The notes under the pieces: generated by a model | Seen by the model: the letters and a program-made list of their open reading frames with translations, nothing else | The model's database searches: none | Told to the model about the DNA's origin: nothing | Shown here: positions 4,454 through 16,873 of the stretch, one piece after another | Numbering within the stretch: position 1 is the first letter of the stretch | Layout of the letters: every line of letters begins with the position of its first letter | Made by a program: the position numbers and the translations under genes | NCBI GenBank assembly: GCA_964019335.1 | Contig: OZ025679.1 | Location: forward strand, 434,001-498,000 | From: Diplonema japonicum | Taxonomy: Eukaryota; Protista; Euglenozoa: Diplonemea | Reading direction: 5' to 3' | Length of the DNA stretch: 64,000 bases

Positions 4454-4501
4454 TATCCGGCAAGAATATAACAAGACGAAATTTGTTTCTTTTTTTTTTT
4501 T

Positions 4502-4538
4502 CCAACGATTCTAAAGCTACAGTTTCTGTACTTTATTG
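4502..4538 (+). other. spliced-leader (SL) exon sequence, Diplonema-like, lacking the first two nt
   Basis: CCAACGATTCTAAAGCTACAGTTTCTGTACTTTATTG versus the recalled Diplonema SL AACCAACGATTTAAAAGCTACAGTTTCTGTACTTTATTG (2 differences). It shares the ACAGTTTCTGTACT...ATTG core with kinetoplastid SLs. Confidence 0.88.
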
Positions 4539-6475
4539 GTGTCCGACTGTGCCAATAAAGTACCGTGAGGAGCTTCACCATTACCTACTACACCGACTCA
4601 AGTTCGAGCTGGGAGACGTGCCGGTGGCCGTGATGGGTGACTTCAACACGGACGAAACCCGTTCCGCCACGCTAAGGAGGGCTTTACAGACGGACTGGGT
4701 AGACGCCGCTGCATTCTGTGCTCGGAGGGATGGAGTGCAGGTAGAGAGCACGCTTGTCAGAACCAACTGCGAGTACGCGGGTGGATAGGGTACTGTTGAA
4801 CAACATCGCGGCCCAGGGGCTCGAACATTGTGGAGTAAACGAGGCTATCTCCGGGTCGGACCACCGATGCCTGTCGGTAACACTCAACATCCCAGCCTTA
4901 AGAGGGCACCCACCGGAGTAGCGGAGACACTGATGCAGAAGTCGAAATACCGTGAGTTCATTGCGGCGCAGAAGCCCACCGAAGCGTTCTCGGAGATAGC
5001 AGACCTCGCGGAGCAGTACCTACTACATGGATACGTGGGACCGGTGCGCAGCGTATACACCGGGAGAGGCAAGGTTCGGGAGCCTACGAAGTCGGAGCTG
5101 AGTGCGAGGTCTACGGGGTCGACAGTTGGGGCGGCAACAAATCGACAACAACGACTTGAGAAGTTGAAGCTCAAAATCCGAAGCGCAAAACAGCAAATGT
5201 TAAAGCTCTATGAGGGCGGGCACTGCGGGCCGCTCCCAGTAGAGGTACGGAACACACTCAGGAACATTACAACGTTGGGGGAAGAGCTGAAGGTCGAGTT
5301 CTGCAAGATCGACGCGGCAGGGAGTATTGATAGCATCAGGGGAGAGCTGGAAATAGCTAAAGACTACGCCCAGGGAATGTTATCGGAGCTGCTCCTACAA
5401 CGCAAGAACATGCAGGCGAAAGCATACGAACGTTCAATACGCTCAGACTTTGGGAAGGAGCGCAGACACATCACGGCCTGGGTCAGAGACCGCCCAAACC
5501 AGAACCCGCATGCAGGTACGAGTCAAAGGAGCGTCCCCCTGGCACCAGAAGGAGATGGCACCGAGGAAGACGGGGACAGCATAGACCACGTCCCAACGAC
5601 GGAAGTACCACGCACACAAGGGTTCAGGTGTGACCTGTGTGAGTCACCACACCCGGACACGGTAACCTTACTCCGCCATCAGCTCTACGAGTGTGCCTGC
5701 GCACGGACGAGCTGGCACAGGACGGTTTGGAACCGCTGCGCGACAGGACGGGATGGCCCCTGTGTCTTGAGCTACACGCAATACTGCCGAGAGGACATGC
5801 CTTTGCATACCTGGAAAAACTGCAACGATACTTGGCCGTGGTGGTTGAGAAGCGGGACGTGGAGCTCGTGCAGAAGGAGGACGTCAACACACAGCCGCTA
5901 CCGTGGGAACGAAATGTAGTAGGAAAGAGATGCCCCGTTCCGATAGCAGGCGAGCTCGAAGGAGTGAGTGGGGTCCTGTCCCAGTACCTGAACCCGCTGC
6001 TACAATGGTTGTCACAGCTGCGCTGGGTGGAGAAGGACACCACCTCGGAGGTGTCGGCGGTGGAGCTAGCCATTGACTTCGAATGGACGACCGGTAAATC
6101 ATTAGGAGGCCTGCTGGAAGATAGGGCACGCAGAATCAAGGCCCTAATCGTAAAGATAAACGCAGCGTGCAGGGCACGGAAGAAGCGACGCCCCTTCCCA
6201 GCGGATGAGCAGAAAAGGGTGAAGTCCCTCATCGCCATAGGAGGAAAGGCAGCTATAGGCTTCTCCAGGAGGCCCATTTTTGCTACCCAGTCCACGCACG
6301 ACAAGCTGATGGATTTGAAGGCCGCCTACAAGCGGGATCGCATCACTCGACTTCGCAAGACGCTCACAGCCACGATCGGGTTGAAAGCAATGCTCCAGAA
6401 GGGGAGTATTAACAGATAGACCCCCCCCCTCCCATAGGGCGGCCCTCTAGCGGGGGGCTTGTCCTGTACTTTGAG
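4502..6475 (+). mobile_element. decayed, internally deleted APE-type non-LTR retrotransposon (family A, copy 1) headed by SL plus an anti-SL hairpin
   Basis: Frameshifted APE/EEP endonuclease (VAVMGDFN ... TRVDRVLLN ... GSDH), then a linker, then a jump near 5490 to the C-terminal CxxC...HQLYEC zinc knuckle and SAVELAIDFE motif. No RT domain remains. The C-terminus and 3' tail are homologous to 15846-16850. Confidence 0.85.
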
Positions 6476-6748
6476 TTTTTTCTTCTCTTCTTCCTTTGTG
6501 TGTTCTCCTTTTTTTTTACCCCCACCCCACCCCCACCCACTCTTTTTCCTTTTACTGGACTGACGTTCAAAAAAAAAAATCAGAAAAAAAAAACCTTTTT
6601 TTTTTCTCGTGCCTTTTTTTTTTTTTAAAGTTTTTTTTTATACATTTTTTTTTTTTTAAATCCCCCGCAAACCATGAAAAGTTCCCCTCCCCCCCTTTTT
6701 TTTTTGGCGCACAGCCCAAAAAATACGGGGGAGACGAGAGAGAGAGAA

Positions 6749-8128
6749 ATGGATAGTAGCGTATCTTCACTAAACATGCTGAAGGCAAAACTAGCCGTCC
6801 TAGGGGTAGAAGGCATGGATGAAGTAAGAGGACGCCCTAAGGAAGGAAACCACCTAAGAATGGAGAAAAACCTGTGGAAAAAGCTCAGGTTCAGAGACGG
6901 CGGGGAGACACGAACAGTTCAACGATTCCACACAAGAAGAACATGCATACAAAAGAACGAGGTAACACAAGCAGGCACATTGGGAAACAGGGCTAACATA
7001 AGCGTTATGTTCAGTAGAATCCGGCTGCTGGTAGAAACTCTATGGTCAGAGCTCCACACCTCACAGGAAGAAAGGGGTCTCTTCGCGACACAGTATTACT
7101 ACCCGGAGACGATCGATAACTACAACCACATGTTTAGGGAGGTTCAGTTTCTGTGTAGAAAACGAGAAAGCGGGGAACACATCCTGACCCTTATCGACAC
7201 ACGTGAGGCGCTCCTCCGCCGTCTCAAGGTGCTTTGCGAAACCCCCGAAGTCAGTAAAATCGCGAAAACATCAGTCCACGAGAATGTCCTCGATGAAATC
7301 GTCAGCAAGGTCAACGAACTCCGCATCGCCACACACAACATCCTCACCTCTGTGTACGCAACACGGAAACGGATAGGCCTGGGCGCACCCGTTATATGGA
7401 AGAACATAAACTATTTTGATAAAATACAATCTGATGTGTCCGAGACCTGCAGCACCCCGGGGATTAGAAGTCTGTTTCTAAAATGCGGCATTGACGTCCA
7501 TCGCAACCCTTTCTTTCTCCCGTCTGGTGCTGTCGTCACCGCCAAACAGCGGAACTGGAAATCCGTTCTGCGCGGGTTCGACTCCATGTACTGCAGATCT
7601 GCAATGCCATGCACCGCCAGCACCCTGAGCATGGAGGAGGACGAGGAGGAACGGAAGAAGCGTCACCCCGTCCTCTCGCTGTCCAGCCTCGTCCCGACCC
7701 TGGAACGGAAGAACGTGAAGCTTGTCAACGCAACCCAGTTGATTTCCAGCGGGAGTGGACGGAACGTTTACAAATACCCAAGCTCTGTGTACACAACACC
7801 AGTACCGCCTTTTGAGACGTTGTTGGTGACGAGGCTTAAGAGGCTGTTGAGACCCAGCGTATGTCAGATACCACTGAGCAGGCTGGTGGAGTGCCACATG
7901 CTCGTCGTTTCGGAGAAGCCTGCGCTTGAGTGGTGGGCGACGCTGCTGTCGGCGTACCGCAAGGTGCGTGCCTTGTTGGTCGTCCGGCATTTCCTGGAGA
8001 GAAACAAACACCTTCAGATCGGCTTCACGAGCGAATACTCGCAGCGGGCACCCGCACACCTGCAGGGCGACACCGACAGCGATCAAAGCGATTTCGGAAG
8101 TTGCTCCACAGCGTCGTCTTCCGACTGA
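6749..8128 (+). CDS. hypothetical helical/coiled-coil protein (~459 aa)
   Basis: Long uninterrupted ORF. The ATG at 6749 follows a purine-rich leader. Confidence 0.75.
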   Translation: MDSSVSSLNMLKAKLAVLGVEGMDEVRGRPKEGNHLRMEKNLWKKLRFRDGGETRTVQRFHTRRTCIQKNEVTQAGTLGNRANISVMFSRIRLLVETLWSELHTSQEERGLFATQYYYPETIDNYNHMFREVQFLCRKRESGEHILTLIDTREALLRRLKVLCETPEVSKIAKTSVHENVLDEIVSKVNELRIATHNILTSVYATRKRIGLGAPVIWKNINYFDKIQSDVSETCSTPGIRSLFLKCGIDVHRNPFFLPSGAVVTAKQRNWKSVLRGFDSMYCRSAMPCTASTLSMEEDEEERKKRHPVLSLSSLVPTLERKNVKLVNATQLISSGSGRNVYKYPSSVYTTPVPPFETLLVTRLKRLLRPSVCQIPLSRLVECHMLVVSEKPALEWWATLLSAYRKVRALLVVRHFLERNKHLQIGFTSEYSQRAPAHLQGDTDSDQSDFGSCSTASSSD

Positions 8129-8286: not shown

Positions 8287-9367
8287 ATGGCCTTCGACAA
8301 GGACCTCCACGTGAAGTACATCGAGTCCCTCGACAGGCAGACAGACACCTTCGAGTACTGGGTCACAGAGCACATTCGGATCAGCGGTGCTTACTGGGGG
8401 CTGAGCGGGCTGTTCTTACTGGGAAGGGAGGATGTGATGGATAAGGAGGGCATCGTAACACACGTGAAAAAATGCCAGCACGAAAGCGGAGGTTTTGGGG
8501 GAAACGTGGGCCACGACCCCCACATGCTGTATACGCTCTCGGCGGTGCAGATACTGGTTTTGTACGACAGCATGGAAGGAGTTGATGTGGATGGGATTGT
8601 GAACTGTATGTTCTAAAAATGAAAAAAAAAGAAATCCCCCTTTTAGATATCAAAGGCAACCAGCTTCCGGACGGGTCCTTCCAGGGCGACGAGTGGGGTG
8701 AGGTAGACCATCGGTTCACGTACTGCGCTTTCAACTGTTTGACACTTCTTGGAAGGCTTTCTGACATAGATATCGAATCGACAGTTCAATACGTCAAAAA
8801 AACCCTGAACTGGGATGGTGGCTTCGGAGTAGCTCCAGGACACGAATCGCATTCCGCATATATCTTTTGCTGCGTGGGTACCTTAGCTATCGCAGAGAGG
8901 TTGGATGAAATAAACGCTGACAAGTTAGCGTGGTGGTTGTGCGAGAGGCAGGTTCCAGACGGTGGGCTCAACGGCCGGCCTGAGAAAAAATCCGATGTGT
9001 GTTACTCATGGTGGGTCATCTCTGCGATGGCCATGCTTGGGAGGCTGCACTGGATTGATAAGGCATCTCTCATCTCGTTCATTCTGAAATGCCAGGACAC
9101 CCAAGGGGGCATCGGCGACAAGCCGGGGAACATGGCTGACGTCTTCCACACCTTCTTCGGTCTCGCCGGGCTCTCCCTCCTTGGTTTTGAGAACGACGGT
9201 GTTCCCCTGAACCCTATTGAACCGGTGTGATTTTGAAGAGGGGAAAAAAAAAAAAAAAAAAACAGATATTCGCCATGCCTCCCGCTGTTCTCGACCGTAT
9301 TGGGGTTAAGCAACGAACAGCACCACAGAGGACAACCGTCCCAAAGGGCACCCCGGGATGCCTTTAA
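8287..9367 (+). CDS. RABGGTB: Rab geranylgeranyltransferase (GGTase II) beta subunit. Introns 8606-8646 and 9225-9265
   Basis: EHIRISGAYWGL, GGFGGNVGHDPHMLYTLSAVQIL, DGSFQGDEWGEVD, GGLNGRPEKKSDVCYSWW and DVFHTFFGLAGLSLLG motifs. Both introns restore conserved sequence (VNYIKG; IEP-IFAMP). Confidence 0.95.
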
Positions 9368-15376: not shown

Positions 15377-15680
15377 TGTAGTGTGGAAAAGAAATTAGCT
15401 ATTTATTGCATACCAATTATGGCATCTAATCGACCCCCCCCCCCCCCCCCCCCCTCCGCTTAACTTTCAGTACGACCTTTTACTTAAAGGATGCTATCAT
15501 TTTTTTTTGTTTATTTCCCCCCTTTTTTTAAGTTTCTATTTTTTTTTTCTTTTTTTTTTCTGTTGTGTTGTCAAAAAAAAAAAAAAGATATTTCGGTTGG
15601 GTTTAACCCCAGTCCACGTGTACCGACGAGCGGACGGTGTTTTGGGGGTTTACACTCTTTTTTTTTTTTTTTTTTTTTTT

Positions 15681-16852
15681 GTACTTTATTGGTGTCCGAC
15701 CGTGCCAATAAAGTCAATAGATAATACGGTTTGAAAAGAGGAAAAATAGAAGAAGAGTAAAAGACGAGAAGACAGAGGGAGGAATCAATAGAAAGCGAAG
15801 AACTAACCTGAAACGAATAGGCTGTGGAAGGAGGAGAGGGATCCGGTGGTAGCCTACCAGTTCAGGAGGATCATAGCAGGAGCAGTCCCCTACATAAGCC
15901 CACACGCCAGTGCGGGACCGAAAACCGTTCCACTCGACCCGGCAAGTGAGGAAGAGGAACCGGACAATGATGACTTGAAAAGAGAGGACGGGAGACCACC
16001 CGGAGAGACAATGCTTCCTCAGAATTATAGATGCGACATATGCACGGCAGTACACCAGAACACAGTGACGCTGCTACGGCACCAGCTGTACGAATGCCCA
16101 CTTGCGCAGGAAGAGCTAGCGAGGGACGGGTTGGAACCGCTACGCGACAGGTGTCTGGAACTGCACGGGATCTTGCCGAGGGGGCACGGATTTGCACACC
16201 TGGAGAGGTTGCAGAGGTACCTGGCGATGATAGTAGCAAAGCGTGATGAGGACCTGATCCAAGTGGAGGATTTTGGAGGAGAACTGCCGTGGGAACGGAA
16301 AGTGGTGGGAGTAAAGCACTTGACGCCGACGTTGGAGCAGCTCGGGACGACAAGTGGGATACTACGGATGTACGCGGAGTCGCTGTTGAAATGGATGTCG
16401 GAGCTAAGATGGGTTAAAGAAGACACGACGTCGGAGGTGACGGCGGTGGAGTTAGCCCTAGACTTCGAAGCGACGACACGAAGATCGCTGGGAGTGACGC
16501 AGGAGGAAAAGGCGCGAAGGATCAAGAAACTGATCCAAAAGGTGAACGACAGGTGCGCATTACAAGGAAAGAAAAAGCCTTTCCCGGCGAAGAACAAAAC
16601 GAGTCCCTCATGGCAATAGGAGGGAAGGCGGCGATAGGCTTTGCAAGGAGACCGATCTTCGCCTCACGAGAAACCCAGGACAGGCTAAAAGAGCTGAAGA
16701 CCAACCTGAAGAAGGACCGCATCAACCGACTGCGAAAAACACTGGTATCCGCCATCGGAACGAAAGCGAGGCTCCAAAAAGGAAGCATCAAGAGATAGAC
16801 CCCCACCCCCCTAAGGGTGGTCCTCGAGTGGGATTTGCCCTTAAACATCGCC
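15681..16852 (+). mobile_element. truncated non-LTR retrotransposon (family A, copy 2) headed by partial SL plus anti-SL hairpin
   Basis: Starts GTACTTTATTGGTGTCCGACCGTGCCAATAAAGT, as at 4528-4561. Then only the post-RT region follows (NRLWK...RRIIAGAV, CDIC...HQLYEC, TAVELALDFE), with the same C-terminus and 3' tail as copy 1. Confidence 0.85.
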
Positions 16853-16873
16853 TTTTTTTTTTCTTAATTTTTT

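Follow-up and report, generated by a model that had tools for sequence, protein, structure and literature searches.

The SLACS, CZAR and CRE retrotransposons of trypanosomatids have an endonuclease of the restriction-like kind and target one fixed site within the spliced leader (SL) RNA genes, and elements of the R2 type possess a structured, protein-binding 5' RNA that is needed in cis. Diplonemids are abundant in the oceans and have been little studied. In the Pr77-hallmark long interspersed nuclear elements (LINEs) of the L1Tc/ingi type, a 5' block is thought to give the RNA a defined, unspliced 5' end (PMC4035085). The 'recycled cDNAs' (complementary DNAs) of dinoflagellates bear a relict, DNA-encoded SL at the 5' end, with tandem partial SLs cut at an internal AG where such a copy has been transcribed, trans-spliced and retroposed once more (PMC6050394). 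Here we describe a LINE clade of the diplonemid Diplonema japonicum, met in a stretch of 64,000 nucleotides (contig OZ025679.1, positions 434,001 to 498,000; hereafter the window), whose 5' end consists of a DNA copy of all or part of the host SL and an arm that folds back on it. We consider it rather probable that the SL and its fold-back form an inherited head of this clade, the stem of which may restrain splicing at an acceptor of the element's own. The literature searched contained no account of LINEs headed by an SL and a fold-back on it.

A spliced leader hairpin at the head of a LINE clade

At 4502-4538 the window reads CCAACGATTCTAAAGCTACAGTTTCTGTACTTTATTG, followed by GTGTCCGACTGTG and, at 4552-4563, by CCAATAAAGTAC, which is the exact reverse complement of 4528-4539. 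A 20-mer across the SL end and the loop has two matches in the window (4528 and 15681; none expected by chance) and 45 in the genome, against none for the reversed control. RNAfold gives the head of this copy (copy 1) an 8-nt loop on a 14-bp stem (-16.6 kcal/mol, z = -2.9) and the head at 15681 the same fold with z = -1.2; Rfam, run on the whole window at gathering thresholds, returned no match. Letters, genome counts and fold agree with the original prediction, made from the letters of the window, that an SL, a loop and a fold-back arm lie at 4502-4563. Two details of it had to be corrected. The 12-nt arm is indeed an exact complement in this copy, but the core arm across the family is 10 nt long, CCAATAAAGT; the extra AC at 4562-4563 is the open reading frame 2 (ORF2) side of a deletion, and these last two paired bases are a chance product of the deletion junction. 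The module thought to be repeated at 15681 does have the same hairpin, but it carries SL nt 29-39 only, behind 23 T residues, and is not SL-capped. Throughout the family the arm pairs with SL nt 31-39 and the next G, forming a 10-bp core stem that is topped by two wobble pairs and a conserved loop. The loop variant of copy 1 occurs a single time in the genome.

The 37-mer at 4502-4538 is nt 3-39 of the organism's 39-nt SL, as had been predicted, and matches the exon of the SL RNA gene. In that gene a conserved block lies upstream of the 39-nt exon AACCAACG...TTTATTG, which is followed by an intron of ~92 nt, a terminal stem-loop and a T-run terminator. Two such genes stand in tandem 352 bp apart at locus L058 (contig C15, 777.6-780.2 kb, at the contig end), adjoined by a 5S ribosomal RNA (rRNA) gene (RF00001, 102.6 bits). 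Pairs with a spacing of ~350 bp and an adjoining 5S rRNA gene were seen both there and on contig C59 at ~512.4 kb. Since the assembly holds only nine copies of the SL RNA gene, its arrays are probably collapsed. Two positions distinguish the exon from the SL given for Diplonema as 'Euglenozoa 14' in PMC3795323; the variant of Diplonema papillatum and other diplonemids is TTTAAAAG and that of the present organism TTCTAAAG. It had been allowed that the SL RNA gene might itself continue with the letters found behind the SL in the window. It does not: its intron begins GTACCCAATC (GTACCC..), and the LINE heads continue otherwise.

Independent support for the exon end comes from public sequence, for which contigs, not reads, from four runs were aligned to the window, where the copy available is a degenerate one. 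A 41-nt stretch at 8606-8646 is absent in X1 and X7 and kept in X6, so that X1 and X7 look RNA-like and X6 DNA-like. Joints departing from the window at 4538/4539 are present in X1, X2 and X7 and in none of the X6 contigs. Because RNA-like contigs depart there, 4538 is the end of the exon and the window letters downstream are not SL RNA intron. The 41-nt stretch itself is a short cis-spliced intron inside a prenyltransferase-like gene (Pfam PF00432).

Genome scans with the loop and arm pattern returned 42 matches, 41 of them behind an SL 3' end, and a looser hairpin pattern returned 48 heads, 37 with the loop TGTCCGACCGTG or single-base variants of it and 11 with TATCGACCGTG. Twenty-eight distinct heads were read, 15 of the 45 heads and a hairpin variant at C1:268441 being left unread. 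LINE sequence directly follows the head in 28 of 28, so the module does not occur mostly without LINE sequence, an outcome that the original prediction had named as fatal to it. Twelve long loci were analysed. Intact copies are ~6.85 kb in length and encode an ORF1 of 756-781 aa and an ORF2 of 1428-1450 aa. In the intact copies L061 and L068, ORF2 has Pfam matches to Exo_endo_phos (E = 4e-9 to 6e-13, covering residues 76-290) and to RVT_1 (E ~5e-21); the combination of an apurinic/apyrimidinic endonuclease (APE) domain with a reverse transcriptase (RT) domain identifies an APE-type retrotransposon without long terminal repeats. The APE domain of the intact ORF2 and the intergenic T-run sites bear out that this is an APE-type LINE lying between ordinary genes and outside the SL RNA genes. 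Pfam did not detect the APE domain in the broken ORFs of the window, and it was alignment to intact copies that placed the junction of copy 1 at about ORF2 residue 189, in the middle of the APE domain as predicted. The protein relatives are diplonemid: two transcriptome proteins in EukProt share 90% and 72% identity, and numerous proteins of Diplonema papillatum share ~45%. ORF1 of lineage B1 (L068:669-3005) has a weak match to an OTU-like cysteine protease (E = 0.006), and an OTU Pfam domain is precomputed in several relatives (P0010, P0054, P0100, P0119).

The head is the 5' terminus that a diplonemid LINE clade has inherited in at least five lineages (A/A', B1, B2, C and the short element D). 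The 16 A/A' heads run from SL nt 1, 2 or 3 through nt 39, and the 11 B1/B2 heads hold only SL nt ~24-39 directly behind a T-run. Lineage C has the full SL and a loop one base shorter. The short element of lineage D (L045) ends in an A-tail; it possesses the complete SL, and its stem of 13-14 bp differs in sequence in the upper part. The 3'-end motif of the A type occurs in 467 copies as compared with ~27 A-type heads; most copies of the family are thus ordinary 5'-truncated ones. At L019/L020 (C60, ~170.3 kb), a 22-nt partial head (CTGTAC..GTCCGAC) and a short T-rich stretch precede a complete B1 head. The whole array directly abuts the 3' terminus of a different LINE and represents a tandem insertion whose first head was aborted or jumped. 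In metagenomes, a pattern scan for the SL plus hairpin had no match, and an ORF2 profile search yielded 13 distant loci, none with SL-like sequence.

Conservation of the hairpin and the probable copying of the leader

ORF2 is 64-66% identical between A and B and 62% between B1 and B2, and ORF1 is 40-45% identical between lineages. Across these diverged lineages there is almost no difference in the 34-nt hairpin or in the box ACGGTTTG(A/T)AAAGA. This conserved box, ACGGTTTGAAAAGA, stands downstream of the hairpin behind a lineage-specific linker of 8-14 nt, and the 5' untranslated region (UTR) beyond it is unalignable between lineages. Such a mosaic, with the same hairpin, an own linker, the same box and an unalignable rest, points to purifying selection and not to a recent exchange of 5' ends; the comparison argues well for purifying selection as the force that maintains both hairpin and box. 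Substitutions in the arm are A-to-G changes that yield G-U wobbles. Of the cells in the stem alignment, 93.9% are paired, the exceptions being changes on one side that are compatible with wobble pairing and the out-of-register row of lineage D. Since the B lineages retain the hairpin with only SL nt ~24-39, the indispensable part appears, on good grounds, to be the hairpin and not the entire leader. Inherited, conserved and continuous with intact 5' UTRs, the anti-SL arm is by all appearances encoded by the element, which was the first of the two models offered with the original prediction. A pseudoknot between the loop (GACCGT) and the box (ACGGTT), for which six pairs are possible in A, B and C, was considered and rejected, the loop of D being different and covariation absent.

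Between hairpin and box lies an AG, 2-8 nt ahead of the box in each lineage. Three genomic copies (C37:577815, C69:310257 and C77:127809) have the SL joined exactly after this linker AG, to GTAGAGCGGTTTG twice in lineage C and to TAACGGTTTG in lineage A1, which means that some RNAs are spliced at this site and are open to retroposition. They account for 3 of 51 full 5' ends, the remaining 48 heads retaining the hairpin. These copies provide good support for a trans-splice acceptor between hairpin and box, and for the view that RNAs spliced there lose the head and rarely template full-length copies.

The manner in which the leader came into the DNA can be read from the 5' junctions. Starts of the A/A' heads fall on SL nt 1 in 2 cases, nt 2 in 8 and nt 3 in 6. 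The loss of leading SL nucleotides noted in the window copy therefore amounts to 0-2 and varies among identical copies, which fits the copying of an SL-capped RNA to its end and is also compatible with the original idea that reverse transcription stops short near a modified cap. Three copies (L009, L025 and L029) that are identical over 1,450 nt differ in the presence or absence of a 'CC' at the junction. The 5' junction must then be remade at each insertion, and inherited junction types are ruled out. Fillers of this kind, found in 8 of the 16 A heads, match a re-copy of SL nt 3-4, from which we infer slippage or an end-to-end template jump on the AACC-AAC repeat. The LINE-type junction 'T-run + ACCAACG' is shared by a retro-pseudogene of the SL RNA, L034. 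Because junction starts, fillers and L034 agree, the template RNA of A-type copies bore the SL at its very 5' end, and entry of the SL into the DNA by copying to the end of such element RNAs is well supported. L034 itself (C2, ~150.6 kb) consists of a T-run, the SL minus its first A and the genuine intron shortened at its 3' side, with no promoter block; SL RNA as such thus gets retroposed.

SL copies are by no means confined to this clade. The genome contains 223 SL 25-mers, which head many unrelated repeat families. Among loci L031-L060, a G follows the SL in every SL-headed family and GT in most, and several families (e.g. GTCGTTGG..) have a complement of SL nt 3-9 just behind the SL. Tandem partial SLs occur at L021 (SL plus SL nt 18-39) and at L047 and L055 (SL plus SL nt 24-39), cut exactly behind the two AGs internal to the SL. 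These three loci show that DNA-encoded SLs are transcribed, trans-spliced and retroposed again.

Internal deletions are frequent. Head-plus-tail copies make up 12 of the 28 distinct heads, and each has its own breakpoint, situated behind the SL within the loop, just past the arm, or 105 to ~700 nt in. Breakpoints that differ from copy to copy fit a jump-prone reverse transcriptase.

A proposed role for the stem and competing explanations

The pyrimidine-rich 3' half of the SL and the first AG (in the AAAG of the arm) both lie within the stem, and it is from this arrangement that a masking role is proposed. By hiding the U-rich SL half and the first AG, the stem might hold back trans-splicing at the element's own acceptor. 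Some transcripts would thereby keep the 5' head; transmission of the head would be restricted to these, and it may be these that the element proteins recognise. The modelled fold gives a hint of such a masking role. Several observations weigh against this reading. Function is deduced from a predicted fold, and the stem is modest, at -13 to -17 kcal/mol with z only -1.2 for the second head. Formal covariation in the stem is nil, no pair having changed on both sides, which is however impossible where the 5' strand is the invariant SL. The public contigs aligned to the window cover a degenerate copy, and no head was seen on transcripts there. The one match to the loop and arm pattern that is not behind an SL 3' end, C1:268441-268462, is a hairpin variant, GTGCCCGACCGTGCCAATAAAG, apparently without an intact SL 3' end (its letters are unread); it could be an SL-less relative. 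As the first AGs past the T-run sit inside the encoded SL, A-type progeny should carry an SL plus a partial SL; only ~1 of 27 A-type copies does (about 26 to 1). Finally, SL nt 3-29 match the host SL perfectly in A, C and D, a fact that fits re-acquisition in each generation better than inheritance. The host-perfect SL nt 3-29 in these lineages favours refreshing of the leader, whereas the stable SL-less B heads favour inheritance.

The scarcity of SL-plus-partial-SL copies would be accounted for, along with the single SL per copy, if the head were an internal promoter or a definer of the 5' end, analogous to Pr77, with RNA polymerase II starting at SL nt 1 or, in B, in the T-run. The head would then be formed anew in each generation with no need of trans-splicing, and the templates would be unspliced. 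We regard this as a tentative possibility. It would account as well for a 5' block conserved across diverged lineages, and it fits head-plus-tail derivatives like RIME and NARTc. There is precedent in the conserved 77-nt 5' signature of the Pr77 elements, with its internal promoter and unspliced transcripts (PMC4035085), and a promoter role has been proposed for the retroposed SLs of dinoflagellates on the same ground of few tandem SLs (PMC6050394). Yet the B lineages propagate without SL nt 1-23, so the start site would have to shift, and the conserved upstream region of genuine SL RNA genes is absent from the LINE copies. Nor did Rfam detect an HDV-like (hepatitis delta virus-like) or other ribozyme in the 5' UTR; a search of the intact-copy 5' UTR with E up to 10 gave one chance match to a long non-coding RNA only.

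Alternatively, the SL might be re-acquired in each generation through trans-splicing at the AGs of the encoded SL, a jump-prone RT collapsing the resulting repeat to a single SL; the hairpin would then be incidental or would help realignment. Trans-splicing at AG17 and AG23 of encoded SLs is documented (L021, L047, L055), SL nt 3-29 equal the host SL in all SL-bearing lineages, and slippage or jumping of the RT is visible in the 'CC' of 8 of the 16 A heads and in the different breakpoints of the 12 of 28 heads on deleted copies. We nevertheless hold this explanation to be unlikely. It demands repeat collapse with an efficiency of ~96%, it leaves the conservation of loop and box unexplained, and the B lineages have never regained the SL (0 of 11), which implies templates unspliced upstream of the hairpin.

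The GT directly behind the SL raises the question of whether the 5' domain of SL RNA (exon, GT and start of the intron) was captured by co-transcription or template switch, the hairpin being a diverged stem-loop I. The genuine intron also carries a 7-nt complement (CAATAAA) of the SL end, 21 nt downstream, the pairing probability in the two gene copies being 0.38 and 0.02, and retroposition of SL RNA is itself seen in L034. Local alignment of the post-SL module with the SL RNA intron is, however, no better than that of shuffled sequence (z -0.4 to +0.35), so homology between the two was rejected, and the many unrelated SL-headed families with other post-SL sequences favour trans-spliced templates in general. 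We find the capture of SL RNA quite doubtful; an ancestral or variant SL RNA gene with an intron of the GTGTCCGAC type would strengthen it. An eye-catching alignment of TCTGATCCATGATCAATAAA with TCCGA-CCGTG-CCAATAAA was dropped, as its score was no better than that of shuffles. In the folded SL RNA, SL nt 2-6 also pair with nt 36-41 across the splice donor.

It is equally doubtful, in our estimate, that the head mimics the SL and exploits the host leader system. In one version the element-encoded leader may make an unspliced, internally started RNA resemble a trans-spliced messenger RNA (mRNA) for capping, export or translation. In the other, the arm may be an internal guide that docks the incoming SL and re-caps the RNA at the original junction; docking would explain both the presence of exactly one SL and its perfect match to the host.

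A neutral relic, that is, a functionless fold-back shared through kinship or recent exchange of 5' ends, would be in keeping with the absence of covariation; it is very improbable all the same, for the mosaic at 62-66% ORF2 identity is unlike recent exchange or neutral drift, and the B lineages retained exactly the stem-forming part of the SL. The second model of the original prediction, a template-switch chimera of an SL-capped small hairpin RNA with 5'-truncated LINE cDNA, deserves next to no credence: heads are joined to many different internal LINE positions and the RT is jump-prone, but in intact elements the head is continuous with a lineage-specific 5' UTR, the breakpoints lie at variable distances behind the SL, the window junction is an internal deletion at an AAAGT shared by the 5' UTR and ORF2 of the element, and stand-alone heads number 0 of the 28 read.

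Window copies, insertion sites and relation to known retrotransposons

Both window copies are dead, internally deleted head-plus-tail members of the clade (Table 1). In copy 1 (4483-6484) the head leads into ORF2 from about residue 189, and a second deletion separates this part from the final ~980 nt; identity to A' copies is 86-90%, and the frame is interrupted by stop codons. Copy 2 (15663-16872) retains 143 nt of a B1 5' end and the last ~1,070 nt. The existence of amplified non-autonomous families was considered and rejected, since every head-plus-tail copy has its own breakpoint and the loop variant in the window is unique.

Table 1. Positions in the window of the parts of the two LINE copies and their flanking T-runs.
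Feature	Position	Strand	Basis or remark
T12 run	4490..4501	+	directly 5' of the element; part of the T-rich target tract (intergenic polypyrimidine tract)
SL relic, DNA copy of SL nt 3-39	4502..4538	+	identical to SL RNA gene exon; RNA contigs diverge after 4538/4539
Hairpin 5' strand, SL nt 29-39 and GTG	4528..4541	+	RNAfold
Hairpin loop TCCGACTG; family form TCCGACCG, here C-to-T	4542..4549	+	RNAfold, genome pattern scans
Hairpin 3' strand (anti-SL arm); core CCAATAAAGT at 4552-4561, AC at 4562-4563 from ORF2	4550..4563	+	RNAfold, comparison with intact copies
AAAGT microhomology of deletion 1 (5' UTR to ~ORF2 residue 189)	4557..4561	+	both parental sites read AAAGT in intact L062 and L066
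ORF2 fragment from second half of APE domain onward, stop-broken	4562..5503	+	86% identical to intact A' copies
ORF2 3' end and 3' UTR behind second deletion, ending ..CTGTACTTTGAG	5504..6475	+	alignment to intact copies
T-run after copy 1 3' end, no poly(A)	6476..6481	+	window letters
T23 run 5' of copy 2	15658..15680	+	window letters
Second hairpin head (B1): SL nt 29-39 only, loop GTGTCCGACCGTG, arm CCAATAAAGT	15681..15714	+	window letters, RNAfold
Remaining B1 5' UTR; AG 15719-15720 at trans-splice acceptor position; box ACGGTTTGAAAAGA 15726-15739	15715..15805	+	alignment
Last ~1,070 nt of B1 element joined to head, RIME-like, ending ..AAACATCGCC	15806..16852	+	alignment
T-run after copy 2 3' end	16853..16862	+	window letters

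At least 12 T residues are found among the 20 bases upstream of 21 of 28 heads, a density that is reached at 5% of positions drawn at random from the window. Elements of type A terminate in ..CACTTTGAG and those of type B in ..AAACATCGCC, and a T-run, never poly(A), comes next in 10 of 10 copies examined and in both window copies. Neither the poly(A) or simple-repeat tail nor the clear target-site duplication of a LINE was found; because T-runs flank both sides, a duplication would be indistinguishable from insertion into a T-run. The longest flanking ORF shares the strand of the element at 10 of 10 loci, and in the window 22 of the 23 ORFs of at least 300 aa are on the + strand, as are both elements. 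Flanking T-runs and strands together indicate that the elements occupy polypyrimidine runs, in sense orientation to gene clusters. For priming we infer a bottom-strand A-run set against the U-run at the RNA 3' end. The strand of the 467 LINE 3' ends is coherent across long contig stretches, as would be expected if they traced divergent polycistronic transcription units. Strand switches fall in long blocks, for example minus then plus on C3, C10, C11 and C12.

Two further features of the 3' end were noted. The A' 3' ends (..CCTGTACTTTGAG; window 6460-6475) have CTGTACTTT in common with the SL 3' end, so that 5 nt at this end of the element could also be bound by the anti-SL arm, which may well be chance. 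One RNA-like X7 contig has the SL joined straight to window position 6476, just past the terminal ..CTTTGAG of the LINE; the conserved LINE 3' end may serve as a trans-splice acceptor for the downstream gene (ORF 6674-8128).

In a host with polycistronic transcription and trans-splicing, a LINE has no upstream promoter of its own and its 5' signals can be removed by trans-splicing. The promoter/ribozyme block of Pr77 is the presumed solution of trypanosomatid LINEs. The layout of the diplonemid clade differs, with a DNA-fixed copy of the SL, an apparently selected fold-back, an acceptor just behind it and sense targeting of polypyrimidine runs. Should the stem prove to govern splicing, or the head to be an SL mimic, the module would amount to a compact natural switch that decides whether an RNA serves as mRNA or as template for retrotransposition, and in that case it would also provide a tool for studies of SL recognition in diplonemids. 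Were the SL-mimic explanation true, it would represent a new retrotransposon way of life in a genome that depends on trans-splicing.

Among the described systems, the Pr77-hallmark LINEs (L1Tc/ingi) resemble the clade in layout. Both are APE-type LINEs of Euglenozoa inside polycistronic gene clusters, both have a short 5'-terminal block common to diverged elements (here the hairpin and box in A, B1, B2 and C and in head-plus-tail copies), and both include non-autonomous head-plus-tail copies. There are also differences: the block here starts with the host SL and folds back on it, no match to an HDV-like ribozyme was found among Rfam families, and the elements have T-runs as insertion sites and a T-run, not poly(A), at the 3' end. 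With the dinoflagellate relict SLs the clade shares an SL at the 5' end of a retro-copy and partial tandems (L021, L047, L055). In contrast to that system, it is the retrotransposons of a euglenozoan that carry the SL; the leader belongs to a conserved, structured and inherited module that seems to be under selection; and the B branch retains only the stem-forming part of the SL. Like SLACS, CZAR and CRE, the clade consists of Euglenozoa retrotransposons physically linked to SL sequence. Unlike them, it is APE-type and occupies intergenic T-runs on many contigs, far from the SL RNA genes, and its complete SL is followed by sequence other than the intron. The structured 5' RNAs of R2-type elements offer an analogy; their endonuclease type and target differ from those of this clade. 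Chimeras of the U6-L1 type differ in that here no stand-alone head was found among the 28 read and the head runs on without a break into the 5' UTR of intact elements.

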